Assembly: GCF_006345805.1 (NCBI RefSeq)
Contig: NC_043005.1
Location: forward strand, 5,642,001-5,706,000
Origin: Octopus sinensis
Lineage: Eukaryota
Length of the DNA: 64,000 bases
Direction: 5' to 3'
In this document: positions 14,098 through 39,519 of the stretch, piece after piece
Layout: each line of letters starts with the position of its first letter
How positions within the stretch are numbered: the stretch's first letter is position 1
Notes under the pieces: generated by a model
Told to the model about the DNA's origin: nothing
Database searches by the model: none
What the model saw: only the letters and a program-made list of their open reading frames with translations
Made by a program: the position numbers and the translations under genes

Positions 14098-14262
14098 ATG
14101 CTGTTGGTTTATTCTAGTTTGGTGTTTTACGCTGGTTTGTTTCTGGGTGTCGAAGGTCATGGTCGACTGATGGACCCTCCTTCCCGGTCTAGTATGTGGC
14201 GTTTGGGGTTCAAGACTCCAGTCAACTATGATGATATTGAGCTATATTGTGGAGGAATGGCG
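14098..14262 (+). CDS. LPMO gene A exon 1 (signal peptide + His1 region)
   Basis: caaaATG start; ends GCG|gtattt; 55 codons. Confidence 0.93.
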
Positions 14263-16602
14263 GTATTTATTTTCTATTTGTGTTTATCGTAAATCTTTTC
14301 TTTTATCAATAATTAATTAATGTATTCAGGAAAAAGCAAATAAACATTTTTTGTTTATTCCTAAATTTGTCTCATTTTAAATTGGTGTAGACTTTGATTT
14401 TGTTTATAATTTATTCTGCCTATTCATATTATTGATAATAATATGCATACATTTGTGTTATAATTGGATTCTGTGTCTAGAATTCTTTTTTTATAATGAT
14501 AGCCAATATAAATGTTGGTTTGATGCTTGTTTGCTTTCTCCAGTCATGTTTTTATATTATATATAGAGAGAGAAAGCAAGAAAGCAAAAGATAGAGAGTG
14601 AGTTAACATAAGTGAAGCAGGATGAGTGTGCATACTAGGCTTGTTAGCAAGCAATGAGTAAAAGAATGCTACAGAGAGAGAGAGAGAGGAGTGAGAGAGA
14701 ATGGTAGAGAGAGAAGAGAGTGTATGAGTAAATAACACTAGTTATGGGAGATGTTGCACAAATGAGAAATTAATTTTGTTTAATTTTATTTTAAGGTAAC
14801 AGATATTTTCCCTTTGAAAATTAATATTCATTTCATTATTTTGTACAAACGCAAAGAAATTTGGTAAAAGTTAGATTATAATTACTGTCTGTATGCCATA
14901 TTACCCACAGCAACAAAAGTTACCCATTACAGCACGTTTTATGATGATTAATGTCATCTTTTTTTTAATCATTTCAACAGCATCAATGGACATTTAATCA
15001 TGGAAAATGTGGAATATGTGGTGATCCTCATGAAGGCCCACGAGCGAATGAAGCAGGTGGTAAATATGCAACTGGAATCATCAGTCGTTATTATCATAAA
15101 GACCAAATCATTACAGTCGATGTTGACTTGACCACCAACCATTTAGGCTGGTTTGAGTTTCGCTTATGTCCAAACAACAATGTAAAGAAACCTGCTACCC
15201 ATGAATGCCTGAACAAATATCTTCTCCGACTGGCCAATGGCAATGGAACTAGACTTTATATTGGTCAAAAAAAGGGACATATTTTTACGAAACTAAAATT
15301 ACCAGCTGGTCTTACTTGCTCTCAGTGTGTTTTCCAATGGAAATACCATACAGGTGAGATGCTGTTTGATTAAAAGTTTTGTGTGTCTGACAGTTATTGC
15401 ATTATTACTTCATTCTTCAATTCTTTAAGTCCCTTAACTCTTGCTCTGTGATGCTCACTATTGCATAATATAAAAATGCTAGTAGCAGTACTTAACCATA
15501 CCTGGGTACAAAGAAAGTTGCACTGCCCACAACATTCTCTCTGAAAAAGACATGCCTGTCATCATCATTGTTTTAACATCCACTTTTCCATCCTTGCATG
15601 GATAAGATGGAATTCATGAAGGCAGATTTTCTATAGCTGGATGCTCTTCTTGTCACTTACCTTTGCCTGTTTCTAAGCAAGATGCTATTTTTCCATGACC
15701 AGATATGTTTTCATGGAAAATTAGAAATGAATGACATTGCTTGTATGATGGTGATTGTGACACTTGTTTACAACTCTCATGCAGTATTGAAAAAAAAAAA
15801 ATAGGGAGTAAACATGCACACACTCACACACATTATATAGCCATAGAAATCTTGCCAAAGCAGACACAGCTCTCAGTGTAGTTGGATCCTGTCTAACCTA
15901 TGTCACCATGGAACATAGACATTAAATGATGATAATGATAGCCTTCTCTCATCATCATCATCATCATCATCATCATCAGTGTTTAATATAAAAACACGGC
16001 TGAAGGTGTGTATGAGGGGGGCATACAACTTGGGACTCAGTACTGGATTGACGTTTCATTTATCTATCTTGTAAAGATGGAAGGTAAAGTTGGCCTCAGT
16101 GGATTTGCATTCAAAGTACCAGAATGACTACAGCAAAGCAATTTATTTGTTGCTTTAATAATGCAGCCAGTTTACCAACTTTGTATTTTACACTATTAAA
16201 CATTTAAAATTTTAAATAATTGATTGTGCTTTTCCTTATACTTTTTTATTAGGGAACACATGGGGTGAAGGTAATAAATGTGTTGGAATGGGATGTTCAG
16301 ATGCACAAGAAGAATTCTACGGCTGTGCTGATATAGCTATTTTGAACAAAGGTGCACCAATTCCATCAACAATACGACCACGAACTCGCAGACCTCATGT
16401 CAGCACTTCAAGATCAGGCCACATGAAACATTCCACAAGCCATCGAAGACCATCAACACAAAGTCCAAGACGTTCTACAAGTGTCCCTCAAAAGTTCAAG
16501 AATTGTCACGCTATTGGTGCCTGGGCTGGTATCTATGATAATTGGTGCAAAGACTTCTGCCCAAAAGGAAGCTGCCCCAAAAATATGTGTCGTTGTGCCT
16601 GA
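14098..16602 (+). CDS. Secreted AA15-family lytic polysaccharide monooxygenase, gene A; join(14098..14262,14981..15353,16253..16602), 295 aa
   Basis: 888 nt open after GT-AG splicing (phases 0,1). Signal peptide MLLVYSSLVFYAGLFLGVEG then His1 (HGRLMDPPSRSSMWR); CGICGDP, NEAGGKYATG, second His in LTTNHLGWFEFRLC (His89), QWKYHTGNTWG, QEEFYGCADI (Glu179-x-Phe181); basic linker; 6-Cys C-terminal module. Confidence 0.95.
14981..15353 (+). CDS. LPMO gene A exon 2
   Basis: tttcaacag|CATCAATGG ... CATACAG|gtgag; 373 nt; encodes HQWTFNHGKCGICGDP...QWKYHT. Confidence 0.95.
16253..16602 (+). CDS. LPMO gene A exon 3 (catalytic C-terminus, linker, 6-Cys module)
   Basis: cttttttattag|GGAACACATGG ... TGA at 16600-16602. 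Confidence 0.93.
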
Positions 16603-16610
16603 ATTTCATA

Positions 16611-16616
16611 AATAAA
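16611..16616 (+). terminator. Candidate polyadenylation signal of gene A
   Basis: AATAAA 8 nt after the stop; the same position is conserved in gene B. Confidence 0.55.
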
Positions 16617-17517
16617 ACTTATTTCTATATCCTGTGTTGATGTATAAAGATCATGAGTTATATCCTTGATATTTAAGAACTTGATTATTAACACATTGTT
16701 AAACTCAAGTATTTTAGTACAACACAATAAATATTGATGGAATAAACTTTCATGCATATACAGAATCAGCTAAAATGTTAGCTAAGAGTTACATATTTAC
16801 AATAGCAGAAAAGCATAAATTGTATATATTTAATTTTATTGTATATAAACTGTATATAATTTAATTTTATATTTATCATGATTTAATTTGATTATTATTT
16901 TTCTTAGAAGAATACTATCAATATTCTTAAAGTGTCATCAGAATTATTGTTAAATTGATGTCATTTATAACCCAGTGTTGTGTTTTGCACACACATTGTC
17001 TATAGGAATTTCTCTCCCAAGACATTTTCTACTGTGAAAGTCTTTCCACATTTGAGTGTACATAAATGTGTTAAATATAATTGTTTACACATATATGTAT
17101 ATTATCAAGTTATGAATAATATGTAAAAGTTAAGCTTTCCTGCTATCTTACTATGTTACTATTGTTATTTTAAGCCATAGTTAGCTCTTATCAAGCAGAA
17201 CTATTAACAAAAGCATTCCAGCCATGACTAAACCATTTTTAATTCAGTTTGTCTTGGATTATATTACCCAATACCTTCTCTTTTTCTTTTAATGAAAAAA
17301 AGACACATTAAGGTATGATTTGGAGGAGATTTAAACTACTATTTCTAGCAAGTCAGGCAACTGCATTAGGCTTTCTTGTTGGTGTTTAGCTGTTTGGATG
17401 TGATGGGTGAAATCTTTTGCAATGTTTTCTTCATATTTTGAAATTAATTCCACTATATTATTACCCTGAAAGACATGGTTATAGTTAAAACAAAGCTAGA
17501 CGGGGAATTAACAGTTA

Positions 17518-18770
17518 TTATGAGGAAAATGCATCATTGGAAGAACAGCCCAATGATAGGAGATTCACCATAAAATAAGCTTTCTCTTTCAAACTGGAAG
17601 AGTTAAATATCGAGTCACTTGTTTCATTTGAAGATTCTTGTGAAATTTCATTTTCATCAATACTTGGACTATGTTTTCCATTTTTTAAATGACCTAATAG
17701 CAAACCATCTATTGTTACATAACCTTATAAGGATAAATAAAAACTATTTTTAGGTGTCAGTTCCACATAGATTTCAACTTCATCTGCTACATCGTTTATG
17801 CATTTTCATGAAGACATCAATGTATGGGTGAAAATAAAGGCAAGCAGTAAAAATGATGCAGATTCAAATTTTCTAAGTCTCTCTAATAACATTTTCAAAT
17901 TATTCTATTTTCTTTTCCTTCATGTTACATTTTCTTAGATGTTTCAATGTATGTACTAGTTGGAGTGGTGTCTTCATCTTGGTTGTTGCTTTCACCAAAA
18001 TGAGGATCCCATTCCAACTAATACATAATATGAAATTCTTCATCTCAGAAATACAGAATTGTATGTTTTGATTTCTCCTTGTATGAAAAGGAATTGTCAT
18101 TGAAAATTTCACAGAATATAAAAGTTACAGTTTTCATAAAACGTTGAAAATTTAGCAAGATATCATAAAAACACTGCTTTTACCACATTTCACCAAACCT
18201 GGCAGAGTTGTTACTTTGTCTTTCTACTGCACATTGAAACATTTCTTACTTTTCACATTCTGAGTTCAAATCTTATCAAGGTTAACTTTACCTTTCATTT
18301 TTCAGGGTCAATAAAATAAAGTACCAGTTAAGAAGTACTGAGTCAATATAATTGACTTGCCTCTCTGCCTCAAAATTTCTGACCTTATTTCAAAATTAGA
18401 AAGAATTATTATCAGGAGTATTGATATTGAATAGCCAGTGATGTATTGAATGTAGTGAACTTGACTTAGAATATGTTCTGTTTGAATTCAGTTCCATTTC
18501 ACCTATGCCAGTAATGTCTTTCAGAAAAAGGCTTTGGTGAAGGTGACAATGCCTCCATTGGATATAGTATGTCTTTTGCATATAGAGAAGAAAACAATTT
18601 ATTTCTTTGTGTTAACGGAACAAGAGGTTGATACCAGTAAACCAATTTTGCATCAGGAACTCAATATTTTGATGAAGTCTCTTTGCTTCATTTATATTTC
18701 CATTTCTTTTGAGGTAAAATGTAAATCTCATTTCAATATCATTGCTCTCACAAAAAACTTTCTGATTTTG
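17518..18770 (-). pseudogene. Unidentified decayed intronless ORF relic (old TE or pseudogene), split by a SINE
   Basis: Minus-strand frames read as protein-like text (..LEWDPHFGESNNQDEDT.., ..INDVADEVEIYVELTPK..GYVTIDGLLLGHLKNG.., ..ESNDIEMRFTFYLKRNG..) interrupted by stops explicable by C-to-T change; no family recognised. Confidence 0.3.
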
Positions 18771-19490
18771 GACCTCAAAAAGAAATCATTAGGTCAAAAG
18801 TTTTTTATACACTAATGAATAACAAGCATAAGTATAAAATCAAAGACTTCATGGTGGATGAGGCGGATATTGTCAAATATATCAATATCAATATTTAACT
18901 GGTACCTTATTTTTTTGATCTCAGAAAGATGAAAGGCAAAATCAATTTCAATAGAACTTAAACCCAGAATGTAAAGATGCTTAATAGACATTTAGTCTGG
19001 CGATCTACCATCTAATACTCTGCTAATAATACTTGTTTCTGACTTAGTCATAAAGCCATAAATTGGGAGATATCACATCCAAAAAGATAAAAGACAAAGT
19101 TGACTTCAGTGGGATTAGAACTCAGAACATAAGGAGCTGGAAGAAATAATACAAGGCCTTTTTTACCTAGCCCTTTAACAATCCTACTAATAATGATAAT
19201 AATTGTTTCTATCATAGGCTCAAGGTCTGAAAATTGGGAAAAGTATTCAGTCAATACCATAAACCCCAGTACTTGGCTTGACAACAACAACAACCTTTTC
19301 TAGTATAGGCACAAGGACTGAAGTTGTGGTGGAAGGGGATAGTCGATTACATCGACCCCAGTACTCAACAGATACTTAGTTTATTGATCTTGAAAGGATG
19401 AAAGGCAAAGTCGACCTCAGAACATAGCGACAGGCAAAATACCACTATGCATTTTGCCCAGTGTACTGATTCTGCCAGCTTGCTGACTTA
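18190..19490. mobile_element. Cluster of about 5 decayed tRNA-derived SINE copies
   Basis: One + copy at about 18190-18400 and several - copies at 18880-19490 (gatgaaaggcaaagtcgacctc, ggcacaagg.ctgaa motifs). Confidence 0.7.
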
Positions 19491-21335
19491 TCAACAACAA
19501 CAAGAACAGTAATAATAATAAAGAGCAAAAGGGTCGTTAACAGATATGGAATTAGAAGAGATAAAAAGGAAAGTAGAAGATAGAAATAATACTTCACCAA
19601 CAGTCAATGTTCCCAGTGAGAACAGAAAAACAGAAGGCTGCACTGAAGACGTAGAACAAAGTGTAAGTGTAAATGTATTCTCAGCAAATGATGCAAAAGT
19701 AATAGGAAGAGTTATATCACAAGAATACGTTGATGACCAACAAGACATAGTGAGGACCCTGAGCTGATATATTAGAGAAGACCAGGATCAAGTACCCTCC
19801 AACCTAAGATACATTGATCAATGCAAGCTCAAAGTTGAAACTGAAAAGATAATTCGATCCTTGGAGTATTCCAGATGAGAAATATAACTGAAACTAAGAA
19901 GATTATTTGGGCAGCAGCTATGATTGCTGCAGATAGAGATGAATACAAAAGAATAGAACAAGCAGAGCATAAAGAACCATACTGGCATAGGCAAATTTGT
20001 GAGAAACAAAGTTAAAAAGACATTTAGGATTGAGAAGAGGGGAATTGCAGAAGGAAAGCATATGAATAATGTTAGAAAGAGCATATAGAATAAGCGATGA
20101 CTGTTATGATGTGATATTGGAAGAATTGAAACAAAGAGTAGTAGCAATCAAAGTAAAACTGGAAAAAAGACAGTTCAGGTAAAACAGATCACTTGAAACA
20201 AATCAGAAGAAAGTGTTACAGGAACTAGATGGGCAAGTACACGTCACAATGGTACCAGATGCAGAGGAAAGCACTGCATTTTGGAAAGGGATCTGGGGCC
20301 AACCTGTAGAGCATAATGATAAAGCAGAGTGGCTGCATGAAATACACGATAGGTTAAGAAATATAGAAGTCCAAGAAAACATAAAGACATAAAGTAAGGA
20401 AATCTTGCTTGTGACAGTTAGGAATGAGGGAGTATTTAAAGCAAAGAAAAAAGGGAAAACAAAGGAAGAAGTACAAAAAGGACATGAAGAAGAATTATGC
20501 AAGAAGAGACTACACAATCAATTCCATGTAGCCACAACAGAAGTTGCTGGAAAAAATAGGTGGGATTGGCTGATGAAAGGAACCCTAAAGAAAGAGACTG
20601 AGAGCACTATACTGGCAGTGCAAAACCAAGATTTGGCCACAAACTGGAGGGTCAACCTTAGAAATGAGCAAGTGTCTCTGCTGTGCCATCTGCAATAGAG
20701 TGGATGAAACCATTGCCCATATCATGAATGAATGTCCTAGACTTGCCCAAAACCACTACAAGGTATGATGACACGACCAGGTAGTGAAAGTGCTCCATTG
20801 GAAACTGCGAAAAGTGGGGGCTTGAGAGAGGCAAGATGTGGTATGAACACAGAGAGTGGTAGAGTCAGAGACTAGCAAAATCTTCTAGGATTTCCCATTT
20901 GAAATAGAGCAGGTGTTAAAGCATAACAGACTGGACTCGGTTGTGGTGGACAAAGTGCACAGTATATGCTATATAGTTGATGTTGCATGTCCCTTTGACC
21001 CATGAATAGTCAAGAAGGAAGAAAAGATAGATAGATACAACCCACTTACGTATGAAATAGCCTGGCTATGGAAAATGAAGGTGTAGATAGTGGCAATTAT
21101 TGTTGGGTCCTTAGTAACGGTATCAGGAGGCATCAAGAGGAATATAAAGGGAATTGGAATAGAGTGCCCAGTAGAACTGTTACAAAAGGTTTGCCTCCTT
21201 GGCACGGCCAGAATAAACAGGAAAGTATTAGATAGCTGAAAAGAACAAATAGCATGGTACTGTAGGCTGCAGGTATTAAGTCCACTATGCACGCAAGACT
21301 CCAGGAGTTCCAACAAAACCTGTGATAAAGAGAAA
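19491..21335 (+). mobile_element. R4/Dong-like non-LTR retrotransposon relic (restriction-like endonuclease)
   Basis: WDWLMKGTLKKETESTILAVQNQ; KVLHWKL; ILWDFPF..DSVVVDK..CYIVDVACPFD (PD..D RLE); LLQKVCLLGTARI; flanked by AAT/AAC-rich repeats. Confidence 0.85.
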
Positions 21336-21344
21336 ATAATAACA

Positions 21345-21765
21345 ATGCTTTCTACTAAAGGCACAAGGCCTGAAATTTGAGGGGAAGGGACTAGTTGATT
21401 ACATCGACCCCAGTATATCACTGGTATTTAATTTATTGACCTCCAAAAGGATGAAAGGAAAAAATTGATCTCAGTGGAATTTGAACTCAGAATGTGAAGA
21501 TTGATGAAATGCTGTTAAGCATTTTGCCCAGCAGGCTAACAATTTTACCAGCTCACCATCTTAATAATAATAATCCTTTCTACTATAGGCACAAGGCCTG
21601 AAATTTAGTGGGAGGGGACTAGTCAATTACATTGACCCCATTGTATCACTGGTTCTTAATTTATTAACCCCTAAAGGATGAAAGGCAAAGTTAGTGTAAA
21701 GATGGATGAAATACTGCCAAGCATTGTGTCTAGCATGCTAACGATTCTGCCAGCTTGCCACCTTA
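21345..21765 (-). mobile_element. Two adjacent SINE copies
   Basis: Twice ctttctacta.aggcacaaggcctgaaattt ... ctgccagct.gccacctt, each bordered by (AAT)n. Confidence 0.7.
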
Positions 21766-21781
21766 ATAATAATAATAATAA

Positions 21782-21812
<31 letters not shown>

Positions 21813-22544
21813 AAGAATATTGCTTTGTTTATTAACTACAAGGGTTGCCAAAAAGATCAAGGATGACAAAATGCAGTGTGAGTTACATAAAAAAAGACAG
21901 AAATAACAAAACAAAAGTAAAACAAAAATAAATTTGAACAAAGAAATTATTCCTCAAAAGAGAATGACCTCCAAAGGCTATTCATGTAAGCCTCACAAAA
22001 CTATGTTTATTCTGACCACTAAGGCAAGCAACTTCTTCCAATTATCTTTCTTGAAGAAGTTAATGAGGGTCTAACTAAAGAGGAAGGTATCTGTTTTCAA
22101 CCCTTCAACCTCATCCACCTTTTTGCTAAGGGCAGATGACAGATGAAATCTGCTTGCCCTTCTTGGCCAAAGAAAGCAATAGGGCAATCTTCACAATGCA
22201 CTCAGCTGCTAGCTGAAACTGTCTACATGTGATAGCAGCCGTTTGATATAACTCCACAAGTCAGCAATGTTTGGACGTTATATGAATACAAGCAGAATGG
22301 TTTCTGTGCACATCTCAAACGGGCCTGGTTGATGGCACTGTCTCTCAATGATTTTATCTTGAACTAAAAATGCCCCAAGTAGTACTGCCAGGTTAGGGAC
22401 TTTTGGCAATTATCCATGGGTCCCTGTCTGAAAATCCTCTAGAACAGACTAGCCACAATTTTCACAAAGATCCCGATTCCCTGAGAATGTGTTACTTTTT
22501 CATGCCAGCACTATTTGAACATCTTTCCAAAGGGTTGAGTTGAG

Positions 22545-22583
<39 letters not shown>

Positions 22584-23053
22584 TAAGTTGTTTGAGAAAC
22601 ATGTAGGTAAGATGATGGCAGCATATAAATACCTAAAAGTCTCTATTAAATATGGTGATAAGATTTATCTGTTGAATTTGATAGGTAAGAAATTTATGCC
22701 TTTGTTAGAGAAGCAAAGAAATTATGAGTAAGATGAGGGATCGTTGTGAAAGAAAATGACTCACAATCTAAGAGTACCCAAGATGACTTTTGTGAAAAAC
22801 AAAATTCAAGGTTTTTAAAGCCACACAAAGAACTTTAAGATTCTCTCAGGATTTTGGTGCTAGAATTAAGAAAGTTCATTTGATTTGTGCTGATATCACT
22901 CATATCCATCAACAAATGAAATTTTCTGGAATATAAGTCAGTAGACATGGTATCAGTTGCATGGGTTCACTAGCTGTGCCAAAGATTACCAAATATGGTA
23001 ATATTTATGAAATGTAGATTTTATCAGAACCAGGAATGCAATGAGATCAAATC

Positions 23054-23922
23054 CAAGCTGTACCTTGAAATCAAGAGGACAGATCCTGTTGTCTACAGCT
23101 CTTTCCTGCAATCAGACCTGGACACAATGCAGCAATGGATCACAGACTGGCAACTGAAACTGGCTGTGGACAAGTGTACCACCATGCATTTTGGGAGAAA
23201 AAACCCTGCGTCCACATACTCCCTCCACAACACTGATATCAAGAAATCCTTTTGCGAGCGTGACCTAGGCATCACTGTCAGCAGTGATTTGCGTTGGACA
23301 AAGCATATCTCTAAAATTGTCAAGAAGGCCAAGGGTGTCTTGGCATCACTCAGCAAGACTTTTGTTAGCCGCTCTCCAGCCATCTATTTAAAACTGTATA
23401 CAGCTATGGTACGACCACACTTGGAATTCGCATCATCAGTTTGGAACCCCTATCTTGCTCAGAACATTGACCTCCTGGAATCTGTTCAGAGACGTGCAAC
23501 CAAACGCATACCCTCCATCAGACACCTACCATATACTGAGCGCCTTGTTTCCCTGGGCATGGATTCACTGAAGCTCCGGCGTCTTGCGACGGACTTGGTA
23601 AGCGCCCACAAAGTTGTCAACCACCTCACCAATAACAACACTGAACACCTTTTTGATCTCCATGTGTCTAACACACGTGGACATGCCTACAAAATCAGAA
23701 AACAACACAGCTCCCATGACTTTCGGAAACATTTCTTCACGCTCAGAGTTGCTGAAGCATGGAATAAACTGCCTGCGTCAGTTGTTGACTGCCATGACAC
23801 TGCATCCTTTAAGGCCCTCATGCTTTCCGAAATCCGTCGAAACTACACCTGATTATATATGCACTTTAGATGAATTGTAGTGCACCTGAGCACTGTACAC
23901 AATGTTTATTATTATTATTATT
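23054..23922 (+). mobile_element. 5'-truncated CR1-like LINE (RT C-terminus, (ATT)n tail)
   Basis: LQSDLDTMQQW..KCTTMHFG..ERDLGI..LYTAMVRPHLEFASSVWNP..LESVQRRATK..RRLATDL..TRGHAYK..FFTLRVAEAWNKLP; frame intact to the stop at 23852; sibling of 49025-50664. Confidence 0.92.
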
Positions 23923-24636
23923 AAAATGTGATCTGTTACAGATATCATTATCAAGCGTATTACAAGTTAATCCTTAGACTCAGTTTTTAACAGCATAACA
24001 GTGCTAATAAGAATGATTATAACAATTAGTGAGCCACATAAAACTTACACATTTTAATCATCATTTTTAATCTGTTTTGATGCAAAATTTTACAAATTAT
24101 TATAACATTGGTTCATTATGCTACAAATTTCAAATATGTCTGCATTGTCATTCCATAGTTAAGGATGTCTAAAGTGTAACATTTGAACTTGTTTTATGTT
24201 AAAGATTTTGATTATGCTTTTTATTTCATTCCATGATTTAAGGTTGTGAAAGATGTTTCACTTGACCACACAAACGCTGTGAAAAGCAGAATTATAGTTT
24301 CTGATTTAGGCACAAGGCCAGCAGTTTTGAGAGGAGAGCTTTAGTCAATACCATGAGTCCCAATACTAGTTTGGTACTTTATTTTATCGACCCCAAAAGA
24401 ATGAATGGCAAATTTGATCTTGGCAGGATTTGAACTTGGAATGTAAAGTGCCAGAACAAATACCATAAATGATTTTTTTTCTGATGTTCTAACATGAGAA
24501 GCAAAATAATATATAGGTTAACAGTACCCATCAAGATTCAAGGTCCATTTTGTGCTACGATGTTAGTCATAAACACCCCATTCACTAATAATATCTAGTC
24601 ATTTCCTTTATGATTCTTTGATTAATTTCCAGGAAA

Positions 24637-24707
24637 TCTTACCTGTTCTCTTCAGTCATGTTCTCACCTGTTTTCCCCTTCAGGCTTGCACGAAATATTC
24701 TTACCTG
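24637..24707 (-). promoter_or_regulatory. Three clustered consensus 5' splice-site sequences on the minus strand
   Basis: CAG|GTAAGA (24699-24707), CAG|GTGAGA (24662-24670), CAG|GTAAGA (24637-24645). Confidence 0.35.
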
Positions 24708-25829: not shown

Positions 25830-26428
25830 CAGGAGTTGGACAAAATAATGGAAACTCCTAGCATCATAGCATTATAATTTTGAAATATCTATGAAACCAT
25901 CAAAAGCTTGTTTGTTTTTATGTTTTTTTATTTATTATTAGTGTTGCTTAATATGTTTTGCTAAAATTGCTGTTTCTTTTCAAATATCATCAGAAAAGGT
26001 ATTTAAAAATCATTAAAATGACAGATCTATCGGACTTTCAAAGAGGTCAAATTGTTGGTGCTTGTATGACAGGCACTAGTGTAACGAAAACAACCAAGCT
26101 GTTTGGTGTATCAAGAAGTACTGTCTCAAAAGTAATGGCAACCTTTGAGAAAGAAGGAAAAACCTCCTCGTCAAAACAAAATTCCGGAAGAAAACCAAAA
26201 CTTTCAAAACATGAATTGTTAGAAAGGATCACAAAAGTACAGCTCCCAAAATTACTGCTGAGCTTAATGACCACCTCAAGAACCCAGTTTCCACAAAATC
26301 TGTTTGCCGGGAGCTGCATGAAGCCAGATTTCACGGGCTGCATTCAGAAAATCATTATTTTCAAAAACAAACATTGCAAAGCATTTAGAGTGGAATAAAA
26401 ACCGACAGAATTGGTCCCTAGAGCAGTG
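25830..26428 (+). mobile_element. Tc1-family transposon 5' half (left TIR + N-terminal HTH of transposase, frameshifted)
   Basis: TA|caggagttggacaaaataatggaaac TIR; MTDLSDFQRGQIVGA..VSRSTVSKV..SGRKPKLS; ends at QNWSLEQWK before the DDE domain. Confidence 0.85.
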
Positions 26429-28104: not shown

Positions 28105-28382
28105 TAAGATCTGCTGTTGTGCTACATTTTGATCTTAGCAAAAAAAGCTGAAGATCTGTATAAAAATATAGGATTGGTAGATAATAAGAAAATATGCAGC
28201 CCTATTACCCACTGCATTTCACCACTGCTACATTTTGATTTTTGTATAAACTAAAGTAAGGTTAAGATCTTTTTTATTTTGATCTTAACAAAAAAATAAA
28301 GAAAGAAAGAACTGCAGTAAAAATACAGGATTGGTAGACATCAAGAAAACATGCAGTACTATTATCCATTGCATTTCATCAG
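28105..28382. repeat. Degenerate tandem duplication, period about 156 bp
   Basis: aggattggtag at 28171 and 28327, with matching flanks (ttttgatctta.caaaaaaa, aagaaaa.atgcag..ctatta.cca.tgcatttca). Confidence 0.7.
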
Positions 28383-28974
28383 TCCCTACCAATGTTTCAG
28401 GGCTAGGAGATAAACAGCTGAAGGTCATTCATATTTCTCATGACCTGGTATGCATTCACAAGCATTTATAGCCATGTTTACAGCACAAACATTGTGTGAC
28501 ATACATCAATTCATCTTCTTCCACACAATATTAATGCTGGGTCTTTAACCAATATAAGAAACCATTATTATTATTCAGTATTTTCATTTTTATCACATGC
28601 TTTCACTGCACCACCAAGTGCAGTTCTGTGTGCCTTAGGTATGTGCTGTGGTTTGTTTTGGTGTTGTTATATTCACTGTATTGAAAGTGCTTTATGTAGA
28701 TGTGTGCAGTGCCTAGTAGTGATATATATATATATATATATATAAATTCAAGCTATTTTCTGTATGTTATATATATTAATTTATTTTCAAGATGTTATAT
28801 GTATTCATGAAGGTAGCAAGCTGGTAGAATCATTAGCATGCTGAACAGAAGGCTTACCAGTGTTTCAGCCATCTTCATGTTCTGAGTTCAAATTCTATGG
28901 AGGTCAACTTTGTCTTTCATCCTTTTGGGGTCAATAAAATAAATAAGTACTAGCTGAGATTTTTTCTGGGATAT

Positions 28975-30262
28975 GCCTGTCATCTCTTTTCTGTTATCAT
29001 TCCATAGCATTGGCATAGCTTCCAGCATATATAGGTCTCAACTCTGTTGTGTCTGTGGATATATTCCTTTTTAGCCAGGACTGGGAAAATATGATTTATT
29101 GCTTCTTCCCCATCACCACATATTCTGCAGTTACTTGTATTTTCCTTCATAATGTGTTTCGGTGGTTTCTGGTGGGGAGGCTTTGATCTTGTGCTATAAT
29201 TAAAAATCCTTATCTCTGCTTTGAGTCCTGAGTTTCTCAACCATTGTTGAGATTTCACTTATCTGTTTAACATATCCCATTATTTGCCATCTAAGGGTTT
29301 TTCTTGCTATCGTTTTACACGGTATTTTGTTGTTCCAGTTCTAGTTTAGATTTCAGTTGCTTCACAATTTTTGTTATTTCCTTTTTTTCTCCATAGTTGT
29401 CAGGTACAATGACTTCTTTCTTGTATTTTTCGGTTTTTTTAAAAACAAAAAACAGTTTCTCATTTTACTCATGTTTTGTGGCTATGTGTACCAGTTTTCC
29501 TTGCTTCTGAGTTAGATATTTCTGCAATCCTATGGTGGTTGTTTTATAGTAGTTTTCTCATTGTATAAGGCCTCTACTGCCTTCACCTTGAAAATCATCG
29601 CCCTTATTGCGGCCCCTATTTGTTCCATGTACTCCTTATTTCAGTCCCTATTTGTTCCATCATCATTATTATCATTATTTACTTTTAATTTGTATGTTTG
29701 TTACAATCACTTGCCGTGACACACCCAGCATCCTAGGGTGGGTGAAGGATAAGAGATGTTACAGTATTACTAAAAGCTTGGGGAGAAGAAGTGGCAGGGG
29801 CAGTAGTGAAATATTTTCATGTAATACAACACCGACATTTAAAATGGCTTTTCTAAGGATGTGGGCAGTACTTGTCAGCACAATCTTTTGAACTTCTCTG
29901 AGACATGGTTCTCCTGGGTTGTTATCTAGATGTTTCTGACATCTCTTTTTTATCATACCTAGGGCACCTACAATAACAGGAACAGTTCTCGTTTTAAGAT
30001 GCCACATCTTTTGTATTTCAATTTCCAGGTCCTTATATTTACTCAATTTGTCAAATTCCTTTACAGATATATTTTTATCAGTGGGAACACTTACATCTAT
30101 TAGTCGACAAGTATTTTCTTCTCTGTCTTGAAAAATTATATCTGGTCGATTAGCCTGGATCCTTCTGTTGGTGTTGACTATAAAAATTCCAGAGGAGAGT
30201 GACATTTTTACCTTCAATGACTGGTTCAGGATAATGCTCATACCAGTAAGCAGAAGTGCTAA
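28975..30262 (-). mobile_element. R4/Dong-like LINE fragments
   Basis: SQQWLRNSGLKAE, CRICGDGEEAINHI..YIHRHNRV; IQANRPDIIFQDREENTCRLIDVSVPTDKN..EFDKLSKYKDL..VPVIVGALG..QKIVLTSTAHILRK. Confidence 0.85.
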
Positions 30263-32566
30263 TTTTGTAGTGTTTATATATTTTCCAATGTGAATACTGT
30301 CATACTTTATCGTGGCAATTATTATTATTTCAAGATGGTGAGCTTATTTGCATTATTGCAAACTATTAAAACATTTTCTGGTGGTGGAACAGATTAGTTT
30401 CAACAAAAGAGGTATGGAGGTATGTCATAAAAGGCAGTGTGTCCTTGCTTGTGGAATTCATCAAGGCAAGGGCAAGGGATGAAGTGATATGCCTTTGTTT
30501 TTCAATAAACTGAGGGGATTTACATATGTTTCAAAGGAGTAGTTGAAAGAAATTATGGTGAATGTGTGAAATGATGCAAGCTCCATCAGCCAACAGGGCA
30601 TATGAAATTGTGTACTTTTTCAAGATTTTGAGAAGACACAGTGTCAGGCAAAGCAGGTGTCCCACATACACGTTGATGTCACAGTATATGGGGAGATGCA
30701 ACACAATGGATGTGGTCAGAGACATTCCTATGATTGTTGACCCACGAGTAAACTGTGAAAAGATATGGAAGCTTTGACAATCAGTGAAAACCATAAGTTA
30801 TCTAGGAGCTGTACTCAATTGTGTGAGTAGAAAGGAATGTAATCAAATGGGAAAGAAAGGGCAGAAAGTCCAGTTGCTTCTGGGAGTAAGAGCCACCAGA
30901 GGGATTTTTACCCAGAAAAGTAGGAAAAGTAGAAAAGGAAAGAAGTAGCAGCAGCAGTAGCTCTCAGAAATCTCTGCTCCAAGAGTACCACTGATAGCAA
31001 CTCCAATGTTTGCAGAAGAAATAATTTGATCCTTAGCATCAGGAGCCAAGAACTAGGTTGAGCACTGAGAAGCAGAAGGGTTCTCTCCTCCAGCATAGAG
31101 ACAACCAGTTGTATCACCATATCACCTTGAAACTTTGGGGATGAACTAGAGGCCTGGTTAAGGATGGAATGGTATCATGCCGAAAAGAAAACCTAGACAC
31201 AATAAAGATGGACAAATCCATTCCAAAATCAAGTAAAGTATGAGGAACCCACTCCCATCTTTTAGGAGAGTATGAGGTTCACAGTTCTTGAAATCACCAA
31301 CAAAGGTCATGGTTGACTCACTGATGTACACACATTTACAATTTACATACACACACACATGCATATACACACACACGTGCATATACACACACACATACAC
31401 AACACACATTGTGTTGATATCCATGCTATAAAAGTATAATCAAAGTCTTCTGTTTGTGACCATCTCACCCATTTCCTATGCACAGGAAACTCAGGTTCAT
31501 ATTATCCACATGTCCATTTCTAAGACAATAGGGTATGATTTGAAGGAAATATGGCTGCATGAAACAGCAGGGATGTTGGACAATATGTGTATTAATTTCT
31601 GTCACTTATATTCTGTGTTGTCAAACAGTCAACCAAAATCAAACTTAATAGCTATCTACATTTTAATTACTGTCTGTCTGTCTATCTATCTGTCTGTCTG
31701 TCTGTCTGTCTGTCTAGTTGCCTTTTTCTGCCTCTCTCTCTCATTTTCTCTCACAAATTTGGGACATAGAGACATATATAACACTTGTCAGATCTTTAAA
31801 AAGCTACAATATTAAGGAACTCATAATCAGGTTGCTTATGACCTTAAAGCTTATGAGGCAGAACAGATCTGTATAGTAATACGATTAACTGATTCTTACA
31901 ATTAATTCTGAGAGGAATAATCAGTGAGTCATTTTGCAGCATGTTTTTGATACTAGTGGTATCTATCTCTGTTTTTGTTTAGCTATCAAATCAGCTTTGC
32001 TCAAACAGACCTATGATCACAAAGCATTCCAGTCATGACACTCTTGTTTTTTCTTGTTTTTTTTTTTTGTAGATATAATGTATCCAACATACCTTTCTTA
32101 AGACATTATGGTACAATCTGAGGGAGATATAGTCACTAATTCAAGCAGATCAACTGATTATGTAGAGCTATCTTTGTTGACTCTTTAAGATCACAGGAGA
32201 ATTTAGTATTGCAAATTAATGAATTTTTCACTACCTTTGTGCTTTAAATTACATTTTCCAGTGGTGCATATTTGTAAATAGGCGAAGTGAATTAGCAAGA
32301 GCTTTCTCTCTGGCACAGAAACCATCATTTACATGAATTGTCACAATATAACATGTCTATCTTTTTGTCAGTAGGCCAAAACATCAATCAAATTTGCTTA
32401 GCATTCATTATATACTTTAGTGACAAAAATTTCCTTTACAAACAATAATAAATAACAAACATTGCTAAATTTTTGTTGATCTACTAATTTTTCTTTTTAT
32501 CTACTCAAAAATTATCTATCTATGCTTGCTTCATTTTTAATTAAAAAAAAGCAAAATAAAAGAAAA

Positions 32567-32709
32567 TATGATGTCAACAACGCAGTTGATAAGCATGGGA
32601 AATTACCCATCTGCTTTCTTCAATTACCCACTATATTCATTCTGAAGATATATTTAAAAGGACAGCACTACACATTTTGCTCCTGAATGCTTCACTAAAC
32701 ACAACCAAA
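32567..32709 (+). promoter_or_regulatory. Proximal promoter / 5' UTR of LPMO gene B
   Basis: Identical to 13955-14097 (offset 18612): TGATAA 32587-32592, GGGAAATTACCC 32597-32608, TATA-like element. Confidence 0.6.
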
Positions 32710-32874
32710 ATGCTGTTGGTTTATTCTAGTTTGGTGTTTTACGCTGGTTTGTTTCTGGGTGTCAAAGGTCATGGTCGACTGATGGACCCTCCTTCCCGGT
32801 CTAGTATGTGGCGTTTGGGGTTCAAGACTCCAGTCAACTATGATGATATTGAACTGTATTGTGGTGGAATATCG
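32710..32874 (+). CDS. LPMO gene B exon 1
   Basis: caaaATG; ends TCG|gtaaat; 55 codons. Confidence 0.93.
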
Positions 32875-33673
32875 GTAAATTATTTTCTATTTGTGTTAAT
32901 CTCAGTCCCAGTTCTTTCCTTTATGCTTAAATTTGTTTGTTTTACTAAATTCTAGACATCACAATATGCAACTGTATGGATGCAATTAACATTGGATAAG
33001 ATGAGTCTCTGTCATCAGGGTAGAGAAGATCTTACATTTCAGATCTTAATGCAGAGAAGTTCAAGATCCTGGTTCAAGCAAACAATATTAAATGATAGGG
33101 AACATAAAGATTTGTTTAAGATAAACAATTATACAACATTAAGATCTGAAATGTTAAGATCTCTTCTAGCCTGATGATGGAGGCTCATCTCGTCCAATGT
33201 TCATTGCTTTCATTATGGTTCATTGCTTCCATTACTACATCTACCAACATTATTATGGATTTCCAATCCCCCAGAAACAGCTGTTGGACTTATAACACTT
33301 TTCTTCCCTTCCTTTCATTTTCTTTGTCATTTGTACTTTATGTAAGTTGGATCTATTAATATAAATATATTTATACTTAAAAATTCATCATCAGAAAGTC
33401 TTCACCTTTTGCTTTCTCTTGTTATGCATGAATACATATATTTGTATTTTGTAGTTCATACCAAACTATTATATTTAATATATCTAATATATGTAATATG
33501 TCTAATTTGTTTATCTGTATAATTGCTTCTATACTTGCTCAACTTGATTCTTCTTATAGCCTTTCTTTATCTTAGGGAATCAATCTTCTGCAAACACATT
33601 AGAGTCTAAGTTTGAATCTTTTGAGCACTACTAAGTTTCATCTATACAGAGAATCTGTGGATCTCATCTGTGG

Positions 33674-33720
<47 letters not shown>

Positions 33721-36700
33721 ACATCCTCATCCTCCTCATCATCATCATTTAACATCTGTTTTCCATGCTGACATGGGTTGGATAATATTTTAATGATGTT
33801 CTAGTCCTTCACTAAAGTGAAGGTGCAATAAACATGTAAAATGCTTAAAAGTTCATTGGAGAAAAATGAAATTTTCATGATCTTGAGTATAACATACTAT
33901 CCTCATTTTTGTCAAAGTCCATTAAAACAAAGAATACAGAAAAGATTCTGAATATTAGATTTACAAAAGATTGAGCAACAGGTATCTTCTGAAGTTGATC
34001 TGGTTGACCACACCACTACCTAATCCAGGTATTAGCAAAGTGGTCTATGTTGACCCCTGGGAATCTGTGTGGCAGTCCATGAGTTCATAAACACCTGAAA
34101 CAATTTTGAACGTTAAGGGTACTGAATCATTATCAATATAATTTGACTGAACTTTTATTGTTCTTTATCAATTTCGCTAAGTATTTTCATTAAATTTCTT
34201 TAAATATTTCTTATTAAAAAGCAGTAATGGCACAAAAGAATGAAGGAATTATTGTTTTTAAATCAAGAAATTTTTTATTAATAATATTTGTTAATTTTGT
34301 TCTAGAAATTTAAACCATGGGGGTTAATAAGTTATTAATGATTCCATGAAGTGGTCAGTGGCATAAAAAGTTTGCCAACCTTTGGCATAATAAAAATAAT
34401 TAATTACCTGACTTTTTATATCTTTTTATTATTTATAGCGTCAATGGGAAAAGAATCATGGAAAATGTGGAATATGTGGTGACCCTTATGATGGCCCAAG
34501 AGAGAACGAAGCAGGTGGTAAATATGCAACTGGAATCATCAGTCGCTATTATCATAAAGACCAAATAATTACAGTTGATGTTGACCTCAAAAACAACCAC
34601 CTGGGTTGGTTTGAGTTCCGCTTGTGTCCAAACAACAATGTAAAGAAACCTGCCACACAAGAGTGCTTGGATAAATATCTTCTCCAACGTGCTGATGGTA
34701 GTGGTAGTCGTATTAAAATTGGCCGAAAGACTGGCCATATTTACACCAAGTTAAGGTTGCCAGCTGGTCTCACCTGTTCTCAGTGTGTCCTCCAGTGGAA
34801 GTATCATACAGGTGAGGTTTTTAACATAACTTTATTTCTCTTTCTCCAAGTCCCAACTAGCCATCAGTACTTAGTAATTGAGCTGGTTGGCAACCAACCA
34901 ATTTCCTAATATCAATAATCTGTGGCCAGTGTTTACCTCCAGTTTTCATAGCATTGAGCTACAAACGAGATGTTAATCATACCCTGGATTGAACACTGGT
35001 CTACAACTAATAGATTTACACACAGAAGGAACTGAACTCAGTATTGCTGCAAGCTAACTACTCGTTTGTATATTACCAGTAATGCTGCTACTTGTTCTTA
35101 GTCTACTGTACTCCTATTTACAGCTAGTATGACTGAACCATTTGAAAATTAAGTGTTTTGGTCACAGTTATAATGAAGGGTCTATGATAGGAAATGAAAG
35201 GACAACATATCAACTAGTTGTCTGCTGCCCTGTCTTCACAGCCATCTACACTCTCTTAGAATAACTGTCTTATTATTATAACTGTTTCTTAGGCAGTGAG
35301 CTGGCTGAAGAGTTAGAACCTTGGAAAAAATGCTTTCCAGTATTTGATCCAGCTCTTTCCATTCTATGTTCAAATACCATCAAAATTAATTTTAACTTTC
35401 ATCTTTTCAGGGTTGATAAAATAATGTACTAGTCTGTTCTGGGAGCAATGTAATCAACTAAACTCCACTACTTCCATTAAAATTGTTGGCCTTGTGTCTG
35501 AATCAGAAACCATTATTAAGGCAGCAATGTGGTAAAATCATTAGCAACATTTCTTTCAGCTCTTTACATTCTGAGTTCAAATTGCACTAAGGTTAACTTT
35601 GCCCATCATCCTCTCAGGTTGATAGAATAATGTATCAGTCTAGAAATGGAGTTGGTGTAACTGACTAACCAATGCTCCCCTTAAAATTGATAACTTTCAG
35701 AAGGAACTAAAAAGAATTATTGTAATTTTTGTTAAGCAAAATAATTAGTGCATCAGAGAAAATGCCTTGGGGAATTCTTTCCAGCTCCTTCTATTCTGAG
35801 TTCAAATCATACTGATGTCAACTTTGACTCTCATCCCTCCAGGGTCAACAGAATAAAATACCGGTCTAGCACTAGGGTCAATGATATCCGTTAACTCCCC
35901 TTTCCACAAAACTGCTAACCTTGTGCCTAAATTAGAAACAATTATTATTATTATTGTTTCAACTTTGAAGATGAGAGAGATGTATCTGATTGCATTTAGG
36001 ATTCAGTGGTTTATATTATATCATCTGTGCTGTGCTTACATTCTGTGTTAAGAGGCAAAATATTTCTATATCCAAAAGAGAGGACAAAGAATTGAGATAA
36101 GTGGTGCATTGCTGTACTCAAGAAAACCTGTCCACTACAACAAAACTGATATCCTAAATTCAAGGTGCTGCATAAAAAGCACTGGTGCTGGTACCACATA
36201 AAAAGCATTGGTGCTGATGCCACATAAAAAGAACTGGTGATGGTGCCATGTAAAAAACACTGGTGATGGTACCACATAAAAAGCACCTAGTATAGTGTTA
36301 AGTGGTTGGCATTAGGAAGGGTACCAAGCAGTAGAAACCAAGCCAAAAACAGACAATGGAACTTGGTGCCGCCCCTGGCCTTGCCAGCTCCTGTAAGCTG
36401 TCCAACCCATGCCAGCATGGAAAACAGATGATGGCAATGATGATGATGATGATGATGAGGAGGAGGAGGAGGAGAAGGAGGATGAATAACTGATATAAGT
36501 GTTGGTTGGTTGATTTCTCCAGTCAAGCTTCACATCATGTAGAATGAAAGTAAAAGAGGGGTACAAAGAGAGTCAACCTAAGAGATACAAGTAACAAAGG
36601 GCCTCTTGCTCAGAGTGAAAGGTAGACTGTATAATGCATGTGTGCAAACAGCCATGCTACATGGCAGTGAAACATAGGCTAGCATGAAAAACATATGTTA

Positions 36701-38915
36701 AACAATGATGATGATGATGAATATGATAAGCTTGGTGTATGTAAAGGAACACTATACATACACAGTAAGAAAGAAATAAACTTGGGGAGGAGGGGGAGAA
36801 GGAGGTGGAGAAGGGGGAAAAGGTGGAGGAGGGGGACTGAATTTTGTGTTTTTCTTACATGCTGTTTAACTAATTATTTAATTGTCAAATTATATCACAT
36901 GCATGATTAGAAAGTTGAGCCAGTTCAGTTTGGTCATAGTTTCCCCAAATGTAACAGTGAAATTCTATCAAACAGTAGTGAGAACAGAACCTTGTACCTT
37001 GGTGTTCATTCCTGCATTGTTGTTCATATAGTGGTTGTTTAGATAATTATTGCTAATTATTTAATTCTGTTTGTAGCATAATCAAGAGGATGATACAGAA
37101 ATGTGTGCTTTTAAAAGAGGTAGAATGTAGGAAGAAAGAAATAGAATTTTTCTTCCCCCATCAATGTCTTATGGTTGAAGACTGGTTTCTGTCATGCTAT
37201 AATTGGTTATTAAGATGAGATACATGAGACCTCAACATTGCTTCCTTCAAATAAGAACTTGAGCTTTACACTGCATGTTGACAAAATACTTTCTTAGGTA
37301 AACTTACAATATCTTCTGGTACAATTTTACAACCAAATGAACTAGGCTGCTAAGCAAGTATCTTGTTTATGGATACAATATAGTATAGCCTTAATGACAA
37401 AATGCAAACAGCTGATGTTTGACATCTCTGATGCTCTGACATCACATTCCATTCAGCAGTCATCTGAAGGTCCTCATTCAATAGAAAGTAACAAACAAAA
37501 TAGTACTTTACTTTAAAACATTAGTCACTGAAATATAGTTAAATAATACTCAATATTTGATATTAAAGTGTATAAGTGAAATAGAAAAATGTCTACATGT
37601 GTAGTAGACTGATGAAACTTGAACTACACTTTTATTACTAGACAAGTGACCATCAATTATACTACAGAGTATCTCTGATACTTGGCAGATGTTTTATTTT
37701 ATTGAGCTAGGAGAGATGAAAGGCAAAGTTGACTTCAGTGGGATTTAAACTTAGCTGAAATAATGGTTCCTGATTTAGGCACAAAGCCAACAATGTCGAG
37801 GGGAGGGTATTAGTCAATACCATCAATTCCAGTACATGACTGGTACTTTATTTTATTGACCTTGAAAGGATAAAAGTAAAGTCAACTTCAGTGAGATTTG
37901 AACTTAGAGTGTAAAGAGCTGGAAAAAAACAGCAAAGTATTTTTTCTGATACTCTTACAATGCTGTCAGCTTGATACCTTAACACCAGCTCAGTAATAAT
38001 AATTCTTACTAATTTTGGCACAAAGCCAGCAATTTTGAGGGAAAAGGGAAGTCAATTCTATCAACCTAAGCAATTGACTGGTACTTTATTTTATCTATCT
38101 CAAAATAGATGAAAAGCAAAGTCAGCCTCAACCAAATTTGAACTCAGAATATAATGAGTGGGAAGAAATGCTGCAAAGTATTTTCTTAACACTCTAACAA
38201 TTCTGTTGGCTTGCCTGATTAATCATTCTTAAATTAGTTATTGTCATTTGTTTCTGCTATTTTAACTGCAATAATTCATCTCCTCAAGATATGTCAGATA
38301 GTGCTAGCAAGATAGGTTATTCTTCTAATATGCAATGTAGTGAGTAGTTCCTACTTTGGTTTGATTTTACAAGAAAAATCTCATGAACTGGATAATGAAT
38401 AATGATTGATAACTGCTTTGAGAACCTGCCAGTGAGCCTGTTTGTCTTTGGTGTTTCCAGTCGGTACTTATTGTAATGTCAGATTAAAATATTAACATAC
38501 TGACTGAGAAAAACACGTAAAAAATATATAATCTTGTAAATGAATATAAAAATAAATTAAGAAAAACATAAAAATATATTTAAAGAACTGCCTTTTTTTA
38601 GGTAACACATGGGGTAAAGGCGATAACTGTGTTGGAATGGGATGTTCTGAAGCACAAGAAGAATTCTATGGTTGTGCAGACATAGGCATCTTGGACAAAG
38701 GTGCACCAATTCCGTCAACAATACGTCCACGAACTCGCAGACCTCATATCCGCATCACTACCAGCCATGTACGAAAACCATCACAGCCTACAAGACGCCC
38801 TGCAAGCTTCAAGAATTGCCATGCTATTGGTTCCTGGGTTGGTATCTATGATACCTGGTGCAAAGATTTCTGCCCAAAAGGTAGCTGTCCATCAAATATG
38901 TGTCGTTGTGACTGA
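32710..38915 (+). CDS. Secreted AA15-family lytic polysaccharide monooxygenase, gene B; join(32710..32874,34439..34811,38602..38915), 283 aa
   Basis: 852 nt open after GT-AG splicing, same exon phases and lengths as A except for a 12-codon-shorter linker. Signal ..GVKG|His1; LKNNHLGWFEFRLC (His89); QEEFYGCADI; C-terminal CHAIGSWVGIYDTWCKDFCPKGSCPSNMCRCD. Confidence 0.95.
32982..33207. repeat. Inverted repeat (about 70-bp arms) in gene B intron 1, MITE-like
   Basis: 32982-33051 versus 33137-33207 are reverse complements (agatgag.ct...tcatcagg.tag..agatctt.acatttcagatcttaatg), with an 85-bp spacer. Confidence 0.85.
34439..34811 (+). CDS. LPMO gene B exon 2
   Basis: tttattatttatag|CGTCAATGG ... 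CATACAG|gtgag; 373 nt. Confidence 0.95.
35290..35950 (+). mobile_element. Three head-to-tail decayed SINE copies in gene B intron 2
   Basis: Three repeats of ttct.a.gttcaaat...acttt...catc...gg.t.a.a.aataa..tac; junctions at short attatt tracts. Confidence 0.7.
36165..36460 (+). mobile_element. RTE-type 3' UTR copy with internal 26-bp tandem repeat
   Basis: cataaaaagcactggtgctggtacca-like unit x4.5 (36171-36287), then gtggttggcattaggaaggg...ccatgccagcatggaaaacagatgatg. Confidence 0.75.
37670..38215 (-). mobile_element. Cluster of about 3 decayed SINE copies in gene B intron 2
   Basis: Repeated gatgaaa.gcaaagt..acttcagtg.gattt.aact and ggcacaaagcca motifs. Confidence 0.65.
38602..38915 (+). 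CDS. LPMO gene B exon 3
   Basis: cttttttttag|GTAACACATGG ... TGA at 38913-38915. Confidence 0.93.
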
Positions 38916-38922
38916 ATTCTGG

Positions 38923-38928
38923 AATAAA
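38923..38928 (+). terminator. Candidate polyadenylation signal of gene B
   Basis: AATAAA 7 nt after the stop, positionally conserved with gene A. Confidence 0.55.

Positions 38929-38938: not shown

Positions 38939-38975
<37 letters not shown>

Positions 38976-39472: not shown

Positions 39473-39519
<47 letters not shown>

Follow-up and report, generated by a model that had tools for sequence, protein, structure and literature searches.

A stretch of 64,000 nucleotides from Octopus sinensis (contig NC_043005.1 of assembly GCF_006345805.1, positions 5,642,001 to 5,706,000 of the forward strand), called the window below and numbered from its first letter, carries two neighboring genes for proteins of AA15, one of the lytic polysaccharide monooxygenase (LPMO) families. 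A preliminary description of this DNA had proposed a tandem pair of intact and apparently secreted AA15 genes, and this molecular identification was fully supported. The two products are likely to be active, secreted, chitin-oxidizing enzymes. The wider proposal, that this secreted pair serves the turnover or remodeling of the octopus's own chitinous structures, is the one we favor; taken as a whole, it is held tentatively, at somewhat under an even chance. Both genes are already annotated, and their discovery is not new. They are sound and fairly ordinary members of a known family. An unclassified module with six cysteine residues (6-Cys module), an unusual residue near the copper site, and probable gene conversion at the 5' end are side points of some interest in their own right.

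Gene structure and catalytic domain

Six-frame translation and inspection of the junctions gave two three-exon genes of like structure on the plus strand. All four introns are of the GT-AG type and interrupt the frame in phase 0 and then in phase 1 in either gene. Exon 1 (165 nt) and exon 2 (373 nt) are equally long in both, and the products of 295 (gene 1) and 283 (gene 2) amino acids are free of internal stops. The interval 14098-38915, to which the preliminary description had assigned two complete three-exon genes, begins exactly at the ATG of gene 1 and closes with the last base of the stop codon of gene 2, and the exons, the GT-AG junctions, and the open frames were all present.

In gene 1 (LOC115215838), exon 1 (14098-14262, + strand) ends at a GT donor in phase 0 and encodes the leader peptide (14098-14157), His1 (14158-14160), and Tyr24 (14227-14229). 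Exon 2 (14981-15353, +), which lies between an AG acceptor and a GT donor in phase 1, specifies the core of the AA15 catalytic domain, with Thr87 at 15134-15136 (ACC) and His89 at 15140-15142. Exon 3 (16253-16602, +, including the stop codon) contains the codons for Trp163 (16261-16263), Glu179 (16309-16311), and Phe181 (16315-16317). The catalytic domain ends at 16341 and is followed by a basic, disordered linker (16342-16503) and the 6-Cys module (16504-16596). A TATA-like box, TATATTTAAAA, at 14037-14047 (+) starts 61 nt 5' of the ATG and is a putative promoter element; the motif AATAAA at 16611-16616 (+), a candidate polyadenylation signal, starts 9 nt past the stop.

Gene 2 (LOC115215892) is arranged in the same way. 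Exon 1 (32710-32874, +) encodes the leader peptide (32710-32769) and His1 (32770-32772), and exon 2 (34439-34811, +) the catalytic core with Asn87 (AAC, 34592-34594) and His89 (34598-34600). Exon 3 (38602-38915, +, including the stop codon) carries Trp163 (38610-38612), Glu179 (38658-38660), and Phe181 (38664-38666), then the linker (38691-38816) and the 6-Cys module (38817-38909). The same TATA-like sequence is present at 32649-32659 (+), again starting 61 nt 5' of the ATG, and a putative AATAAA signal, recognized by its motif, occupies 38923-38928 (+) and starts 8 nt past the stop. No third copy or fragment was found in the window, where tblastn with both proteins returned the six exons only.

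The product of gene 1 is 100% identical to the O. sinensis RefSeq protein XP_029641028.1 and maps to about 5.656 Mb on chromosome CM016867.1 of GCA_006345805.1, and the product of gene 2 matches O. sinensis XP_029641103.1 exactly. Orthologues lie on one scaffold in Octopus bimaculoides (XP_014785156.1 and XP_014785145.1) and are consecutive entries from one chromosome in Octopus vulgaris (CAI9728616.1 and CAI9728617.1); one or more copies are present in Argonauta hians. The matches bear out the octopus genome that the preliminary description had called probable. The public names are "uncharacterized protein" and "Chitin-binding type-4 domain-containing protein", the latter being used by UniProt for the orthologues. 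An origin by contamination or horizontal transfer was rejected in view of the spliceosomal introns and of the position among remnants of animal transposons on a chromosome-scale scaffold, and it is also contradicted by the orthologues in three Octopus species and Argonauta.

The O. vulgaris entry CAI9728617.1 (722 amino acids) is a fusion of the gene 2 orthologue with monocarboxylate transporter 12 and opens with a 19-residue exon that matches the intergenic stretch 22756-22812 (+) and replaces the residues of the signal peptide. The fusion is probably an annotation artifact, and gene 2 falls into a protein cluster represented by a transporter because of this fused model. The neighboring transporter itself lies outside the window.

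Both proteins begin with a hydrophobic leader of 20 residues that directly precedes a histidine. Residues are numbered for the mature protein after removal of this leader, with the junction between …GLFLGVEG and HGRLMDPP…, so that His21 of the precursor becomes His1 and aligns with residue 1 of mature TdAA15A from the firebrat Thermobia domestica. Cleavage before His1 is predicted for both copies, by eye, from the TdAA15A alignment, and from the modeled N-terminal helix; the signal peptide of the preliminary description is likewise a predicted feature of both. The other residues named there were also recovered in both proteins, namely the brace residues His1 and His89, Glu179-x-Phe181, and the conserved cysteine pattern with a C-terminal module. 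Ten cysteines fall into the catalytic domain (mature positions 31, 45, 48, 98, 111, 148, 151, 169, 174, and 184) and six into the C-terminal part of each. Ten conserved cysteines are known from the AA15 catalytic domain (Sabbadin et al. 2018, PMC5823890).

The Pfam profile LPMO_10 matched residues 21-207 over its full length (profile positions 1-183 of 183) with E values of 7e-21 and 2.5e-19, while an NCBIfam scan gave sub-threshold noise only. By sequence, the sole solved relative was TdAA15A (PDB 5MSZ), aligned with E = 8e-52 between residues 21-209 and residues 1-192 of the chain, at a catalytic-domain identity of 47% (gene 1) and 50% (gene 2). Octopus His1, His89, and Phe181 align with TdAA15A His1, His91, and Tyr184, and Glu179-Glu180-Phe181 with Glu182-Glu183-Tyr184. 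In TdAA15A, His1 and His91 form the brace and Tyr184 is the axial residue (PMC5823890). An AlphaFold2 model built with 110 homologues reached a mean predicted local distance difference test score (pLDDT) of 84.9, mostly above 90 in the catalytic domain, below 50 in the linker, and about 92 in the C-terminal module. When this model was compared with the PDB by Foldseek, 5MSZ was again the best match (E = 2.4e-23; template modeling (TM) score 0.90 on the target), and a weak AA10 match came next. With a full-length profile match, a close solved relative, and a predicted fold of this quality, hidden Markov model and structure comparisons agree with the earlier assignment, and both proteins are placed in CAZy family AA15.

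Among 124 aligned relatives, His1 was found in 123, His89 in 124, Glu179 in 123, and Phe181 in 120, and Tyr24 and Trp163 in 107 and 95. At His1, His89, Glu179, Phe181, and Trp163 the octopus pair has the majority residue. The position two residues before the second brace histidine (-2) is different. Gene 1 has Thr87 and gene 2 has Asn87 there, as against Ala89 in TdAA15A; the threonine is shared by Argonauta and the asparagine by the O. bimaculoides orthologue of gene 2. This substitution is a side observation of some interest of its own.

The linker and the 6-Cys module

The catalytic domain is followed in both proteins by a disordered linker of 42-54 residues, rich in Arg, Ser, and Pro and with a pI of about 12. 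An RTRR motif in it was considered as a furin site and dropped, as the O. bimaculoides orthologue of gene 1 does not conserve it. The linker leads to a single copy of the module with the spacing C-x13-C-x3-C-x4-C-x4-C-x-C and the consensus C-x-A-x-G-x-W-x-G-x(4)-D-x-W-C-x(2)-N-C-x(2)-G-x-C-P-x(3)-C-x-C. No Pfam family besides LPMO_10 matched the octopus proteins at E <= 1, which leaves the module without a Pfam match. Modeled alone, it gave a pLDDT of 80 and a short strand, a helix, and a strand, and Foldseek found no neighbor of this model in the PDB at E <= 10.

A profile was built from 44 copies of the module found among the top homologues, mostly from mollusks and other lophotrochozoans. 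Insect group I enzymes (LPMO15-1) have a C-terminal region with two 6-Cys repeats of the form C-X15-C-X3-C-X6-9-C-X4-C-X1-C, described as unrelated to CBM14 (Qu et al. 2022, PMC9156745). The profile aligned end to end with both repeats of TcLPMO15-1, LmLPMO15-1, and OfLPMO15-1, at 31-34 and about 22 bits, and the octopus module is therefore homologous to them. In the literature, an earlier bioinformatic survey regarded the Cys-rich tails of AA15s as conditionally disordered regions, CBM14 is named as the carbohydrate-binding module of AA15s in a review of LPMO modules, and the founding paper reported fusions of AA15 with CBM1 (PMC5823890).

The module is widespread. One to five copies occurred in 62 of 121 top homologues, and a profile search of 1.84 billion cluster representatives retrieved 803 proteins at E <= 0.001, including one from the haptophyte Phaeocystis cordata. 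The highest number, 22 copies, was reached in one protein of 1459 amino acids from an environmental assembly. The domains that accompany the module were scanned in the 87 proteins of at least 280 amino acids within the best 150 profile matches. LPMO_10 was present in 17 of these, a GH18 chitinase in two, and Ig domains in one, and the remaining proteins of this sample had no Pfam family at E <= 1e-5. In another of the matched proteins (P0147), three copies of the module stand N-terminal to a GH18 chitinase motif. Given these companion domains, the module probably serves to hold the enzyme on chitin or the matrix around it. It is the most interesting loose end of the analysis.

Origin of the pair and its proposed role

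Tandem duplicates of secreted enzymes are common. The two octopus proteins are 83% identical. By Nei-Gojobori counting, the ratio of nonsynonymous to synonymous divergence (omega) between the genes was 0.20 overall and 0.12 for the catalytic part (exons 2-3), where synonymous divergence (dS) amounted to 0.85; the module gave 0.14 and the linker 0.86. Both copies are old and have long been held under purifying selection, and the linker alone drifts. Exon 1 departs from this picture, with a dS of 0.08 as compared with 0.86 for exon 2. By blastn, it belongs to a block of 335 alignment columns with 97.3% identity (13955-14288 in gene 1, 32567-32901 in gene 2, + strand) that takes in the TATA-like box within 143 bp of 5' flank, exon 1, and the start of intron 1. 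Nucleotide identity is 81% in exon 2 and 77% in exon 3, and the introns cannot be aligned except for shared repeats. The near-identical block suggests gene conversion of the 5' end as the simplest reading, and, given the apparently converted promoter and leader region, the two genes may share their regulation.

A neighbor-joining tree calculated without exon 1 united the octopod sequences in one clade with 99% bootstrap support. Each O. sinensis copy paired with its O. bimaculoides orthologue, and the duplication thus predates the split of these two species. Argonauta was placed with gene 2 in 65% of the bootstraps and outside both copies in 33%, so the duplication may also be older than the separation from Argonauta. 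In O. bimaculoides, the two copies are both intact.

A contig in Logan from SRR25158141 (locus L002, 1744 bp) contains an intronless, transcript-like coding sequence at 50-958 for a protein of 302 amino acids that is 60% identical to gene 1. This protein has the same architecture, with a leader, an AA15 domain, a basic linker, and a single 6-Cys module. Among relatives outside the octopods it is the nearest, and one protein of its cluster occurs on 61 contigs. The source animal was perhaps a squid or cuttlefish; at least one related animal thus transcribes a gene of this type. Searches of the literature on LPMOs and cephalopods and on AA15 since 2019 turned up no study of function, as the preliminary description had supposed, or of expression for any cephalopod AA15, and searches with the locus and accession identifiers of the two genes found nothing. 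The occurrence of AA15 in mollusks, also stated there, was published with the founding of the family in 2018 (PMC5823890).

In the proposed mechanism, removal of the leader would expose His1, whose amino group and side chain would, together with His89, hold one copper in a histidine brace, with Phe181 beneath the copper and Glu179 in its second shell. The domain would rest on crystalline chitin with its flat face, which bears Tyr24 and Trp163. Reduced Cu(I) with O2 or H2O2 would then oxidize a glycosidic carbon, presumably C1 as in the AA15s assayed so far, and the break in the chain would offer fresh ends to GH18 chitinases. The basic, disordered linker would connect the catalytic domain to the folded 6-Cys module as a probable anchor to chitin or matrix. 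In this scheme, copper binding, the substrate chitin, the C1 regiochemistry, and the binding function of the module are inferred.

For the role in remodeling, the cuticle of the esophagus, crop, and stomach would be a candidate target, in parallel to the part played by the insect group I enzymes in cuticle turnover. The sucker lining, which is shed, the beak, the radula, and the stylets are further candidates among the chitinous structures of the octopus. As summarized in a review, cuticle lines the esophagus, crop, and stomach, and chitin is secreted by the tract epithelium. Remodeling is favored because the architecture of the octopus proteins resembles that of LPMO15-1, which is required if the old cuticle is to be thinned at the molt, rather than that of the gut-specific insect group III, which consists of the catalytic domain alone without the Cys module (PMC9156745). 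It is favored also because LPMO_10 is listed among the domains of oyster shell-matrix proteins in mantle-transcriptome products and because endogenous AA15 is reported to be very low in the digestive organs of the shipworm.

Several observations weigh against this proposal. The protein of gene 1 is recorded only in the genome assembly, with no Logan contig, and the 90%-identity clusters of gene 1 and gene 2 have no Logan member. The octopod residue at position -2 is a minority state among the 124 relatives (Ala in 90, Thr in 14, Val in 11, Asn in three), and LPMO15-1 has Ala there. LPMO15-1 also differs in having two repeats instead of one and a conserved spacer of the type NPYLLYYKDF, which is absent in octopus and replaced by the disordered basic linker. 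The catalytic domain has more residues in common with the digestive TdAA15A (47-50%) than with the insect group I enzymes (about 40% overall). As the module is present in 62 of 121 top relatives, mostly lophotrochozoan, the architecture does not separate the two roles, and the crustacean diet together with chitinases in saliva and digestive gland makes a digestive role equally natural.

The same chitin-oxidizing AA15s may be secreted into saliva or digestive juice and aid GH18 chitinases on the crustacean exoskeleton in the course of external and gastric digestion. The preliminary description had named digestion of crustacean prey first, with remodeling of beak, radula, or gut cuticle as its other option. 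We consider the digestive role possible but rather unlikely. The octopus preys on crabs, and chitinase activity and transcripts are reported from its posterior salivary gland, digestive gland, and stomach; the AA15s of Thermobia and of insect group III are gut enzymes, the former being the origin of TdAA15A with its near half-identical catalytic domain; and a duplicated pair would suit an increase in dosage or specialization. On the other hand, a paper on the transcriptome of the octopus salivary and digestive glands reports chitinases, but its main text is without the words "LPMO", "monooxygenase", or "chitin-binding". The insect gut-specific AA15s do not have the C-terminal Cys module of the octopus proteins, endogenous AA15 is scarce in the digestive organs of the one mollusk examined, the shipworm, and the two copies in the window contrast with the expansion to more than 20 isoforms in Thermobia (PMC5823890). 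Digestion and remodeling could also be split between the copies.

An active LPMO with a main substrate other than chitin, such as cellulose or another polysaccharide of ingested algae or tunicates, or a different matrix glycan, is improbable. TdAA15A cleaves cellulose as well as chitin (PMC5823890), cellulase activity is recorded for the octopus digestive gland, and the change from Ala to Thr or Asn near His89 could alter reactivity. Phe181, however, corresponds to the axial state of LPMO15-1 and of TdAA15B, which is chitin-specific, whereas the cellulose-active Thermobia isoforms typically have Tyr (PMC5823890); Trp163 is also the residue of LPMO15-1, and the companions of the module include GH18 but no cellulase domain in the sample scanned. 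A non-catalytic LPMO-like protein, acting as a chitin-binding lectin or immune recognition molecule, as a structural protein of the matrix, or as a carrier of copper, has a similarly small and marginally lower probability. Some histidine-brace proteins, of the X325/Bim1 type, are not enzymes. The LPMO_10 domain of the oyster shell matrix could reflect a structural role, and the UniProt name of the orthologues speaks merely of a chitin-binding domain. Yet all residues known to matter in AA15 catalysis, bar the Ala at -2, are kept in both copies and the orthologues, the top matches in sequence and in structure are a demonstrated enzyme, and the catalytic domain is under strong purifying selection. 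That one or both genes only look intact and are silent relics is highly improbable. Although neither the exact proteins nor the members of their 90%-identity clusters were met on any transcript-like contig in Logan, each copy has open frames, canonical splice sites, a TATA-like box, and an AATAAA motif, and a close cephalopod-like homologue is present on an intronless, transcript-like contig. The low omega (0.12-0.2 across a dS of about 0.85), together with intactness in several species, including both O. bimaculoides copies, is a strong argument against pseudogenes.

To return to remodeling of the octopus's own chitin, a more specific and rather doubtful version holds that the 6-Cys module may be an ancient, unclassified chitin-binding family that tethers an LPMO with Thr or Asn at position 87 to the chitin linings of the octopod for a molt-like oxidative shedding in a soft-bodied mollusk. 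Animal LPMOs have been functionally tested in few arthropods only, in molting, peritrophic-matrix turnover, and cellulose digestion by the firebrat. Mollusks hold many AA15 genes, and no characterized one was found in the literature. The octopus would be useful here: it eats chitin-armored prey, makes several chitinous structures itself, and appears to have just this small pair, which would make expression mapping and knock-down simple. The site and substrate of the two enzymes would tell whether oxidative turnover of chitin, known from the arthropod molt, goes back further and is common to lophotrochozoans too. The module, widespread and found on chitin-active enzymes but lacking a Pfam model or a solved relative, is a candidate for a new family of binding modules. 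The pair fills a gap and does not overturn current views.

Surroundings of the genes and comparison with known AA15 systems

The rest of the window contains remnants of mobile elements and simple repeats. On the 5' side of gene 1, three successive open reading frames (ORFs) broken by frame changes occupy 10163-11903 (+); the second resembles a PIF1-like helicase (7e-45) and the third a Pif1 2B domain (4e-11), and the whole is probably a decayed Helitron-type transposon. Fragments of non-LTR reverse transcriptases were located at 22995-23852 (+), 49498-50307 (+), 41171-42420 (-), and 47168-47635 (-). The first of them, between the two LPMO genes, and the second have long near-identical protein stretches in common and look like a pair of rather recent copies from a single family of elements. 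Also between the genes, an ORF at 25958-26398 (+), perhaps left over from a Tc1/mariner element, encodes a helix-turn-helix of the transposase type (HTH_28, HTH_23, and, weakly, Sleeping Beauty HTH). Near the end of the window, an ORF at 61698-62249 (-) has a GIY-YIG nuclease domain and derives possibly from a Penelope-like element. A CA/TG-rich stretch lies at about 13760-13860, upstream of gene 1, and a run of ATT/TAT trinucleotides at about 38940-38975, just past the polyadenylation signal of gene 2, with similar runs farther downstream at about 39450-39520. Such simple repeats flanking the genes account for the poly-Ile, poly-Leu, and Cys-Val frames of the mechanically compiled ORF list.

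Of the known systems, TdAA15A is like the octopus proteins over the whole catalytic domain, with the pair of brace histidines, the Glu two residues before the axial site, the ten cysteines, and Tyr24 in common. It differs at three sites, where octopus has Phe181 for Tyr184, Trp163 for Tyr166, and Thr87 or Asn87 for Ala89, and it is a gut enzyme that consists of the catalytic domain only and acts on cellulose too, whereas the octopus proteins add the basic linker and the 6-Cys module. TdAA15B, compared here by its published description, has the axial Phe but again the catalytic domain only. Other AA15s from mollusks and lophotrochozoans (oyster, scallop, abalone, limpet, and Lingula) are 42-60% identical to the octopus proteins and have the same catalytic residues. 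Their linkers are usually Pro/Thr-rich and mucin-like, in contrast to the strongly basic linker of octopus, and bivalves and gastropods contributed several entries each to the top matches, whereas Octopus contributed just this pair.

The insect group I enzymes TcLPMO15-1, LmLPMO15-1, and OfLPMO15-1 share with the octopus proteins the order of signal peptide (predicted in octopus), AA15 domain, and C-terminal Cys-rich region, the last with homology of the octopus module to both repeats. They also share the Glu-x-Phe motif with its axial Phe and Trp at the position of TdAA15A Tyr166 (PMC9156745). LPMO15-1 is a single-copy orthologue, set against two tandem copies in octopus, at an identity of about 40%. 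From architecture and pairwise identity, the octopus proteins are best described as group I-like in architecture and of the chitin type, a designation that stops short of membership in group I.

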